Shown: positions 13,286-29,855 of the stretch, one piece after another
Layout of the letters: the number at the start of each line of letters is the position of its first letter
How positions within the stretch are numbered: the first letter of the stretch is position 1
Source: Hormiphora californensis
Taxonomy: Eukaryota > Animalia > Ctenophora
DNA: 64,000 nucleotides
Assembly (NCBI GenBank): GCA_020137815.1
Contig: CM035359.1
Span: 1,860,001-1,924,000 of the forward strand
Reading direction: 5' to 3'
The notes under the pieces: model-generated
Told to the model about the DNA's origin: nothing
Database searches by the model: none
What the model saw: the letters and a program-made list of their open reading frames with translations, nothing else
Made by a program: the position numbers and the translations under genes

Positions 13286-16200
13286 ATGACGGAGTATTGT
13301 CATAGGGAACGGGTTGACAAGGACTATCTGACTGAAATCAGGTATGCAGAAACTGTTCATATCAGTTTGAAATTGAATTTCTTGTTTTGTGTTTTTTTTA
13401 AAATTTTCAATGCTCTCACATCACATTTTGTCACAGTTTGAGCTGTCTCTTATCTCTGTATTGCTTGAGGATCTCTCTAATTGTGAGATACCAATCTCTC
13501 TCTGTACTCAACGGCTATGAGTAATGCTTCTGCTAGCAGCTTCAAGGACCGGTTGAGAGTGTATAGTGATGAAAATGAAAGGGTGCGGAGGAGTGTCTAT
13601 GGTGAAGTACAGGGCGAACTTTTTGACTTGGTGAATGATCTGTTTAGTCTTGCGGGTATGAAGGATTCCTTTCCCAAGAGTTTGTCAGCTAGTCGTAGTG
13701 TGTGGGATAGCTTGAAGTGTCCAAGTAAAAGTAAGATCAAGGCGATCAAAAAGCCGGATCTTGACATATTCGTGGAGAAGGTGTGCCTTTTGTTAGTGGA
13801 AAGGTGCTACCCTGTACTTGACCGCCTGAGTAACGAAGTGGAAGACAGTGAGAGGAGGATATTGGATAGTCAAGAGGAGTTGATTGTTTCTCAGCGAGCA
13901 TTGGTGGAGGCTCAGGGACAACTTGTTAAACTTCAGTGTGAGTTGTTGGAGAAGCGGGATAAGGAGATAACTGCAGTACAGGTTACAGCAGAAGAAGAGA
14001 TCAAGACCTTTTCCTCTGTTCTCAGGAAGGGTTGTGACACTGCCCTGGCTCCTAAGCGAATCAGCACAGCGATTAGTAGTGCAACAGAGGATAGGATGAG
14101 CAATTTGATTGTCCATGGGTTGAGTGATTGCAAAAGTGAAAACAACAACGATTTGGAGATAGAAGTCAGACGCCTGTTTGATTACCTAGGCGAGTGTACT
14201 ACCAATGTTTGGGGTATGGAGCGCCTTGGTAGGTACAAGGAGGGTACCGACCGACCAGTCAAGCTGCGTTTAAGTGGCCGGAATTTCCGAGATCAAGTTC
14301 TATCCTCCAAGAGTAGTCTGAAGAACTCGAAAGACTGCAAGGATATTTTTATATCCCCTGATCGATCGCCCGAGGAGAGAGAGGAGAGGAGGAAGTTGGT
14401 GGCTGAGCTGAGGGAGAGGAAGGGGGTGGAGCCGGGGAAGAACTTTGGAATCAGAGGAGGCAAGGTGATGGAGGTGGTGATTTGAGTGTATGGGCGTGTG
14501 TGTGGGACTGATGATACGTAATTTGCTAGTTTTGTGACCGGATTGTTGAGCATCAGAGTACTGGACATTTAATCTGGAATTTAGACTTAATATTTATTTA
14601 TATTTTAAGGGTTTGAAGCAGAAGTGAACCGCTCTGATGCTCCGTGTTACTAGGGTTTTTTAGATTTTAGTATTCTACGGGGTCTGAGCGTGTATACAAA
14701 TGCCAATATTATTATTATTAATGCTGCAGTTAGTTCCCTCTCAAAATCCCTTCCCCATGACACACCTCTCTTAAATCCCCCTATCTTCAGTTGTGATACA
14801 AGTGATTGTTGCTACCTCACCCGGGTCTTTACCTACACCGACACCCCTCCTCTTGGCCTCCGGACTTGTCTAGATGCATGGAGCAACTGTACCCCTGTCA
14901 AGGGAGCTGTGACGAGTGAGGGGCTAAGTGATCTGGAGAAAATATGGCTGGTAGGTACTCCGGGATAAATTATATTAAATTGTATAATTGGGGTAGGTAT
15001 AGGTACTGTTTTGGGTACAGTAAAACCTCAATCCAATATTTAAAGGTTGGGATTGTAAAAAGGTAATAAACAACTTCAAAATGTGGGGCTCAGGGAATAT
15101 GGACTGAAGGTTCAGATCATGATCATGTTGCTATCAACAACAGGCCCCAGGGGTATCTCGGGTCCTAGGACCCCAAGAACTCCGGGGGCTAGGAGGGTCT
15201 TGTTCATTCCAAACACCTTCTAAACTCAATTCCCCTATCTAGCTGGTAATCTGTATCCTGTTGGCAATAGTCCTGGTTGTTATTGTTTACTTTATTCTGA
15301 GGATCCGGAGACAGAAGTACAAACAGTACCCGGTGAGTAGTGTCTTAATTGGACTTAGTTTTTCCTCGATATATACTGTCCTGGCTATGTAACACATACA
15401 GTCAGAACTCAGACCACTGGCTGCTCAGGAAAAGGGCCGATGTCTTGTTATCAGGGTCCGACTGTATCATATGGTTAGTCGCAATCAAAGGATTAGGTTA
15501 ATATCATGTGGCTTTGTTTTGCAGTCTCTAGGATATAGACATTAGACTGTTAAGTTCCACATTCTTCAATGTTAGGCGCCAAGAAAACAGTGAGAGAGAG
15601 AGAGAGGGGAGAGAGAGAGAGAGTCCTTGCTTGCTAAGTGTGTATGTGGGTGCAGGGGGAGCTGCATTTAACGAGCAGCTAGTGAGTTTCTCAAGACGCA
15701 ACAAACTGTGTGAGATAGATCATCATGTGGGAATTATAGCGAGGGGATAGTATCAGTATCATGATGTTACTTCATCCACCGCGTGTTCATCGGAATTCGA
15801 CTCTGAATCTGGCGGCCCCTTCTCTCAAGAAACTTATTTTATCATTCCTCCTTGTCAACCCCTATAGCACAAGTTATGATCCCCTATCCTAAACCCTATC
15901 CTAAATATTATATATCGCCTTGACCCCTCCCCTATCCTAAACAATTCCCAACCCAATTACCCGTATATCCTCTCGACCCCTCCCCTATCTCAGGATTACG
16001 AGACGAAAGGAACGGTTACAGACTCCCCTGCCAGCATGGTAATACAAGTGGAGAGTGCACCTCCTCCCAAGCCTGTTGAGGCTGCAGCTGCCGTGTTTGC
16101 AGTTACTAACGCTACCCTGAGACCCACTACAAGAGAGAGGACACCGCCCGATCTGAGTGCCAAACTGGATCATCTTCTCAAGGTATACATTGCAGGACAT

Positions 16201-29855: not shown

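Follow-up and report, generated by a model that had tools for sequence, protein, structure and literature searches.

Can the microtubule-binding tip of dynein be found without its motor, at the end of a membrane protein? The question is raised by a locus of the ctenophore Hormiphora californensis that lies at positions 13286–29855 of a stretch of 64,000 nucleotides (nt) of forward-strand DNA (GenBank assembly GCA_020137815.1, contig CM035359.1, positions 1,860,001 to 1,924,000), referred to below as the window. The microtubule-binding domain (MTBD) of dynein heavy chains is commonly treated as a part of the motor, in which the AAA ring determines its affinity by way of the stalk. At this locus the same domain, according to comparisons of sequences and of predicted structures, stands alone with a stub of the stalk at the cytoplasmic end of a protein with one transmembrane helix, and the family to which the protein belongs has been seen so far only in ctenophores.

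One gene of 17 exons

The gene was rebuilt on the + strand from open frames, splice sites and tblastn alignments of orthologues. Each of the 17 exons is bordered by AG and GT, the phases agree both arithmetically and in the three split codons, which are all resolved, and the only stop lies at 29853–29855. The coding sequence has about 601–604 codons, the lower figure corresponding to about 1806 nt including the stop and the higher, of 1815 nt, to splicing at the 27807 acceptor; ten residues that are invariant in the family are present in exons 14–17. The 17 in-frame exons of the original prediction, with the transmembrane exon at 15243–15332 and the MTBD exons at 28178–29855, were thus recovered with the same coordinates and the same peptides.

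A whole-library HMMER search with exon 14 (38 residues) yielded one true relative, P0001 (588 residues, 76% identity over the exon), together with two spurious repeat proteins, and a search with P0001 led to six further clusters of 384–600 residues. These relatives include KAL5270478 of Mnemiopsis leidyi ("hypothetical protein") and XP_063688700 of Bolinopsis microptera ("uncharacterized protein LOC134821829"); in public databases the orthologues are labelled only as uncharacterized or hypothetical. When P0007, P0001 and P0009 are aligned to the window by tblastn, residues 1–600 are collinear over all 17 exons. The orthologues of 587–600 residues from Mnemiopsis, Bolinopsis and other ctenophores combine transmembrane helix and MTBD within one product, in agreement with the claim of one gene comprising a Cys-rich N-terminus, one transmembrane helix, a basic flank and helical repeats. 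Two members (P0004, P0006) lie complete on contigs just 3.5 and 3.0 kb long, and since the gene has 16 introns, such contigs probably derive from spliced mRNA.

In this species the RNA evidence concerns the 3' part of the gene. All six junctions of exons 11–17 are seen as GT..AG joints (27134>27269, 27342>27807, 27902>28178, 28291>28592, 28669>29235 and 29360>29766) in RNA contigs from a seawater RNA-Seq run, which differ from the window by 0–2 letters; a run carrying the same species label contained nothing of the gene. What speaks against a single gene is that these contigs, 151–229 nt in length, cover the joints of exons 11–17 and stop short of the transmembrane exon. Of the proposal that transmembrane and MTBD exons share one mRNA, the part concerning exons 11–17 is therefore confirmed by RNA, and the link to exons 1–10 is shown by orthologues only. 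The transmembrane exons and the MTBD exons could be imagined as two separate genes in this species, divided by a minus-strand cathepsin gene; indeed, a complete cathepsin-L-like open reading frame (ORF) lies antisense at 17642–18661, in the interval from exon 5 to exon 6, and no RNA contig bridging 16472>20996 was obtained among those of 151–229 nt. Antisense genes nested in introns are common, however, and exons 1–17 are collinear, in phase and free of stops and agree with undivided proteins from at least five other ctenophore sources, in some cases on short contigs of transcript size, whereas the paralogues described below have the transmembrane helix and the MTBD within one uninterrupted ORF. 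We reject the division into two genes as most improbable. The comparisons thus identify the locus as a single gene of 17 exons that encodes about 601 residues; for this species, the connection of the transmembrane exon with the tail is drawn from the orthologues. The exons, with what each is predicted to contain and the evidence for it, are the following.

13286–13341, + strand: exon 1, with the start codon, the first Cys of the exoplasmic N-terminal segment and a phase-2 donor (tblastn with P0007, residues 1–22; GT donor, split codon finished by exon 2)
14791–14950, + strand: exon 2, Cys-rich (5 Cys), ending ...GLSDLEKIWL (tblastn with P0007 and P0001, E 4e-9; AG/GT, phase)
15243–15332, + strand: exon 3, transmembrane helix followed by the basic flank RIRRQKYKQ (borders; single transmembrane helix at the same place in orthologues)
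15994–16182, + strand: exon 4, juxtamembrane linker, predicted disordered in an orthologue (tblastn; borders; predicted local distance difference test score, pLDDT, below 50 at P0001 residues 75–133)
16410–16472, + strand: exon 5, beginning of the helical region (tblastn; AG/GT, phase 0)
20996–21078, + strand: exon 6, after a 4.5-kb intron holding the minus-strand cathepsin-L-like gene (tblastn; borders)
21395–21533, + strand: exon 7, helical region (tblastn; borders, phase)
21815–21922, + strand: exon 8, helical repeat with the motif L-x2-A-I-x3-D-x3-L (tblastn; motif count)
22087–22221, + strand: exon 9, helical repeat with the same motif L-x2-A-I-x3-D-x3-L (tblastn; motif count)
22858–22964, + strand: exon 10, helical region, phase-2 donor (tblastn; borders)
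27028–27134, + strand: exon 11, helical repeat (tblastn; RNA joint 27134>27269)
27269–27342, + strand: exon 12, conserved stretch LKRRYLQKRLKGNLNVAIQ (tblastn, 70% identity; RNA joints on both sides)
27807–27902, + strand: exon 13, alternative acceptors 27807/27816 (RNA joint 27342>27807; alignment of relatives)
28178–28291, + strand: exon 14, MTBD helix H1 and PP turn (...IAEIKSYTAPPIQ), preceded by a stub of stalk helix CC1 (76% identity to P0001; RNA joints)
28592–28669, + strand: exon 15, MTBD helix H2 and start of H3 (...LIVLGEEPEVVRDW...) (93% identity to P0007; RNA joints)
29235–29360, + strand: exon 16, MTBD helices H3–H5 with the family-specific basic motif KTGxxSLKRR (tblastn; RNA joints)
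29766–29855, + strand: exon 17, MTBD helix H6 (SKAAKVFYLW), about 15 residues of CC2 stub, stop (tblastn; RNA joint 29360>29766)

The two acceptors of exon 13 are in frame and 9 nt apart, and the RNA contig is spliced at 27807; among the relatives, the three additional residues occur in isoform X1 of Bolinopsis but not in the protein of Mnemiopsis. The ORF at 17642–18661 on the minus strand, antisense within intron 5, encodes a complete cathepsin-L-like cysteine protease of 339 residues with a signal peptide, and intron 1 contains an open frame of 332 residues (13487–14482, + strand) that has no Pfam match and resembles an ORF1-type retroposon protein. Because the flanking exons match single proteins elsewhere, both were read as nested elements and not as gene boundaries. 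The introns also contain a short interspersed element (29357–29484, with similar peptides at about 17270–17400 and 22255–22400), which reaches a contig depth of about 734 in the seawater RNA run, many of the contigs continuing into unrelated sequence; this very high depth and these joins suggest a widespread transcribed repeat. Intron 10 is G-rich between 23200 and 25800, with a strong GC skew of 0.17–0.21, and includes within this stretch a tandem array (25408–25791) whose unit translates to GSKVGLAGSG. Microsatellites of serine-leucine type are located at 26750–26980 and at about 13000–13100.

Kinship of the C-terminal domain to dynein

As proxies for the window protein, two orthologues (P0001, P0007) and a paralogue with a single exon (L002) were used. 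A phmmer search of the PDB with P0001 placed dynein MTBDs in the seven best positions with marginal E-values, from 0.005. A profile of seven sequences performed no better than the single sequence, and a broader family profile of 21 sequences was required: with it, all 12 best matches are dynein, with E-values of 5e-7 (8glv_Fm) and 6.6e-7 (6rzb_C), and the alignment spans the domain from H1 to the Trp of H6/CC2. The chain 6rzb_C is the MTBD of mouse dynein-1; 8glv_Fm, whose entry label reads only AAA+ ATPase, was taken as an axonemal dynein heavy chain (4191 residues, from a flagellar doublet structure). Similarity to bona fide dynein MTBDs is thus significant at the level of sequence. Ten columns are invariant in the 21-sequence alignment (E, S, PP, V, G, W, G, A, W), and the signature E-[ILV]-[KR]-S ... 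PP ... V ... G ... W ... A ... W is present in window exons 14–17; judged from these alignments, the invariant residues of the family are those of the motif of the dynein stalk tip, and the match exceeds chance. Moreover, a hidden Markov model (HMM) of the family domain matches the MTBD stretch of the dynein heavy chains of the same genome with 17–38 bits. The Pfam family PF12777, the central part of which corresponds to the dynein MTBD, is the sole Pfam match of two paralogues (15.9 and 13.3 bits, below the cut-off) and is carried by the nearest clusters of the ESM Atlas, where a search of named clusters other than PF12777 gave no match. Scanning the genome for PF12777 produced 21 matches, mostly in large ORFs taken as true dynein heavy chains, and none at a motor-less locus. 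Searches with single exons were blank (nothing in Pfam for exons 13–17, and only chance leucine-rich-repeat matches in the PDB for the 38 residues of exon 14), as expected for pieces of only 26–42 residues.

The C-terminal domain, as delimited by structural comparison, consists of about 140 residues, comprising helices H1–H6 and about three heptads each of CC1 and CC2; the structural match takes in some 25 residues of CC1 and some 20 of H6/CC2, and the protein ends about 15 residues past the conserved Trp. In the AlphaFold model of P0001, residues 444–588 have block-mean pLDDT values of about 50–60 at the first residues and of 74–91 from about residue 460 onwards. The best Foldseek matches of this model are nearly all dynein MTBD or stalk structures, for instance 6kjo with a template modelling (TM) score of 0.69 and a root-mean-square deviation (rmsd) of 2.1 Å over 120 columns. 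With VIA-align, 5ayh is matched with Z 15.2 and rmsd 3.0 over 139 aligned residues (444–588 versus mouse 3269–3410), followed by 8i3j (Z 14.2) and 3err (Z 14.1). Dynein accounts for eleven of the 12 best chains, the lowest of them being 2rr7 with Z 11.3, whereas unrelated chains have Z values of at most 8; the non-dynein 7jtk_C reaches Z 11.6 with an rmsd of 23.9, and the next such chain is 9ya2_L with Z 9.4. The domain-only model of L002 is predicted with higher values (pLDDT 90.9, predicted TM score 0.84) and has Foldseek TM scores of 0.70–0.76 to dynein MTBDs; in a search of 48,161 representative chains made independently of Foldseek, it matches 5ayh and 3err with Z 16.9 and other dynein MTBDs with Z 14.8, 13.3 and 11.9, against a background of Z 4.8 or less.

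Two observations argue against the assignment: the gathering cut-off of PF12777 (24 bits) is reached by no family member, P0001, P0007 and the window exons giving no match at all, and the modelled structures are those of an orthologue and a paralogue, standing in for the joined product of the window. Taken together, the profiles and the models nevertheless identify the C-terminal domain as a homologue of the dynein heavy-chain MTBD. The six-helix bundle H1–H6 between the bases of CC1 and CC2 is found in both models, and the features that make a dynein heavy chain, an AAA+ ring and a long antiparallel stalk, are absent from a protein of about 601 residues in which Pfam finds no AAA domain; without ring and long stalk, the domain would therefore not be switchable by a motor. 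The claim of a dynein MTBD-like tail lacking an AAA ring is thereby borne out, both by the profile (E 5e-7) and by the clear similarity of the AlphaFold models to MTBD structures in Foldseek and in the further comparisons (Z 15–17).

Compared with dynein MTBDs of solved structure (3ERR, 5AYH, 6RZB, 6KJO, 8I3J), the family shares the six-helix fold over about 140 residues with an rmsd of about 3 Å, and the signature E-[IL]-[KR]-S-x3-P-P-x2-V ... G ... W ... A ... W. It differs in lacking the motor and the long stalk, in carrying the domain on a transmembrane protein, and in a 3-residue insertion and an invariant KTGxxSxKRR after H3. On the other hand, several non-dynein chains match most of the domain, with Z values clearly below those of dynein and a likeness seen in structure: 9ya2_L from the Toxoplasma intraconoidal microtubule (Z 9.9), 9fqr_Xl from the bovine sperm doublet (Z 9.8), and 7jtk_C and 7jrj_I from the Chlamydomonas radial spoke (Z 7.3). 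A further chain, 9e5c_2e, is also among the non-dynein chains at Z 7–10, well above background. To our knowledge, none of these is a membrane protein. Such intermediate matches to chains of microtubule structures suggest that motor-less MTBD-like modules may be more widespread.

Membrane anchor and ctenophore family

The N-terminal segment of about 70 residues contains six Cys and no hydrophobic signal peptide. Over 19 residues, the helix of exon 3 averages about 3.6 on the Kyte-Doolittle scale (calculated by hand), compared with 3.3–3.8 in the orthologues, and a Pfam search with this exon gave only weak matches of transmembrane type. The protein thus has the features of a single-pass membrane protein, namely a single hydrophobic helix about 20 residues long, a positive cytoplasmic flank and the absence of a cleavable signal peptide. 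The flanks of the helix being acidic on the N-side and basic (RIRRQKYKQ) on the C-side, the positive-inside rule places the C-terminal bulk in the cytoplasm, and we infer a topology with the N-terminus outside and the C-terminus cytoplasmic. About 60 residues following the membrane are predicted to be disordered (pLDDT below 50 in the AlphaFold model of P0001). They precede an α-helical repeat region of about 300 residues (approximately 134–445), with helices of 13–35 residues, in which the motif L-x2-A-[IM]-x3-D-x3-L is repeated two to four times at a spacing of about 55 residues; the motif counts are on average above those of shuffled controls, with single shuffles equalling the observed count in some members. 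Structure comparison of the helical region revealed nothing beyond generic helical repeats, and Pfam found no catalytic or signalling domain in the protein.

The gene has close company in its own genome. Searches with P0007 and a paralogue, covering the 110.7-Mb assembly of 45 contigs, located at least five loci carrying the domain, the window gene included. Those outside the window are listed here by contig.

C1:3484763–3486742: paralogue in a single ORF of about 660 residues whose outer part is Cys-rich; after the transmembrane helix come a charged helical region bearing the L-x2-A-I motif and a terminal MTBD
C1:6614457–6614822, − strand: smallest member, 186 residues in one ORF: an N-terminal transmembrane helix, then about 50 residues of linker and an MTBD-like domain (L009, G000:C1:6612960-6616316, ORF 1495–2055)
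C11:5879376–5879732: domain locus with an ORF for a hydrophobic helix upstream in another frame
C1:6900230–6900646: domain locus with a helical-repeat exon upstream
C1:772976–773143: weak match

Other ctenophore sources hold a second subfamily of 14 clusters. Over both subfamilies, 25 of the 28 members scanned have one transmembrane helix and the MTBD motif at about 105–110 residues from the C-terminus, the other three beginning inside the protein; nearly all of the 25 have Cys before the helix, and every full-length member has exactly one transmembrane helix. The segments preceding it range, in the sequences scanned, from less than 30 to about 310 residues. In a maximum-likelihood tree (unrooted, with several long branches), the branch that parts 22 motor-less domains from seven dynein heavy chains of this genome has 100/98 support. 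Read from these sequences, the hallmark of the family is an outer segment that is Cys-rich and variable, followed by a single transmembrane helix, a helical spacer and, at the C-terminus, the MTBD; the membrane-anchored architecture put forward for the window gene is conserved across ctenophores and recurs in the paralogues.

Protein searches restricted to the domain returned the family itself and no named match outside ctenophores, with a length filter that leaves room for longer or shorter kin. The original prediction had mentioned similar tails on soluble hillarin/KY-like proteins, which are marked by W180 and transglutaminase-like domains; none of these proteins is among the matches in the family protein and Atlas searches, and no family member has a Pfam transglutaminase or LIM domain. 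On these sequences, the family appears to be confined so far to ctenophores, where it is conserved across genera and has multiplied into paralogues. Literature searches retrieved no description of a dynein MTBD detached from the motor on single-pass membrane proteins. The dynein MTBD and membrane-microtubule linkers are each known already; as far as we found, the new part is the motor-less MTBD on single-pass membrane proteins. One member of the second subfamily, P0021 of Bolinopsis microptera (513 residues), starts in the charged helical region and has no hydrophobic helix. Its public name seems to be a low-complexity artefact of that region; it has no precomputed Pfam family and therefore no calponin-homology match.

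A possible link between membrane and microtubules

How might such a protein work? We propose that the outer segment would face the outside or the lumen of an organelle, that the motor-less cytoplasmic tip would bind the microtubule lattice at the tubulin site used by dynein, and that the flexible linker and the helical spacer would lie between this tip and the membrane anchor. The result would be a static, non-motor link holding the membrane, or a ligand of the outer segment, to microtubules. To this static tether, microtubule binding included, we assign a probability of about 0.6. The working proposed here is that of linkers such as CLIMP-63/CKAP4, which is single-pass with static cytoplasmic microtubule binding; the parallel is one of analogy only, the microtubule-binding element of CLIMP-63/CKAP4 not being derived from dynein and having no relation to the family in sequence or fold.

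The close structural relatives of the domain are all microtubule-bound modules, including every solved relative with Z above 9. The surface that would meet tubulin is less uniform. Of the contacts of mouse dynein-1, which we take to be K3298/K3299 in H1, R3306, R3342 in H3 and R3382 in H6, the subfamily of the window protein keeps a basic residue at the positions aligned to R3306 and R3342. It has T/N at the K3298/K3299 positions and S at the R3382 position, and the net charge of the domain is only about +1, as in the ordinary dynein MTBDs of the same genome; these two features count against microtubule binding. It is thus possible, though in our view unlikely, that the MTBD fold was kept and microtubule binding lost, the domain serving as a protein-protein module with another cytoplasmic partner in receptors or adhesion molecules. 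Such a loss would agree with the several contact positions that are non-basic, with a net charge near zero or negative in many members, with invariant residues that belong mostly to the core or structure (PP, G, W, A, W), and with the invariant K-T-G-x-x-S-x-K-R-R, a family-specific motif that has no dynein counterpart. The same motif, however, adjoins H3 and its KRR cluster adds positive charge there, two of the contact positions are still basic, and subfamily B has K-R at the K3298/K3299 positions of H1.

The link might instead be regulated, the helical region and the stalk stub relaying a signal or a force, or the protein might recruit dynein or compete with it at the tubulin site. The registry of the stalk sets the microtubule affinity of dynein, and about three heptads of each of its two helices, the affinity-setting element, are retained here; outer segments that are variable and Cys-rich and span less than 30 to about 310 residues are also what would be expected of ligand-binding parts. 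The lack of any catalytic or signalling domain in Pfam speaks against regulation, which we consider improbable, and the static tether remains our preferred reading.

As to where a tether might act, the original prediction had named ciliary or comb-plate membranes. Two ctenophore-specific proteins, CTENO64 (59 kDa, 97% identity between Bolinopsis and Mnemiopsis) and CTENO189 (1582 residues, with metalloprotease and death domains), are proteins of the comb-plate lamella, located between axonemal doublets and ciliary membrane (bioRxiv 10.1101/2022.03.27.486007). The protein of the window is neither of them: CTENO189 is ruled out by its length and its metalloprotease and death domains, and CTENO64 by its published size and conservation, the values here being about 67 kDa and about 73% between Bolinopsis and Mnemiopsis. 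None of the members of the family clusters bears the CTENO64 name. Jokura et al. list 21 abundant comb-plate candidates, none of which is a ctenophore-specific protein of about 67 kDa; a membrane protein of low abundance could escape such a screen. Nothing in these comparisons points to cilia or comb plates, and a role in the comb plate is speculative.

If microtubule binding is true, the family would constitute a new class of membrane-microtubule linker and, at the same time, offer a minimal MTBD of natural origin in which the stalk registry is fixed, the 186-residue member L009 being a handy minimal form of the architecture. In other animals adhesion is coupled to actin or intermediate filaments. 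Rather doubtful, and offered as such, is the idea that ctenophores moved the microtubule-binding tip of dynein onto a radiating set of single-pass receptors whose Cys-rich outer domains vary, and which would couple contacts of the cell surface or the ciliary membrane directly to microtubules in a manner specific to the lineage, for example in the links between membrane and doublets of compound cilia. In the giant compound cilia of ctenophores these links are only partly known, and the members of the family may thus be regarded as candidate components of them.

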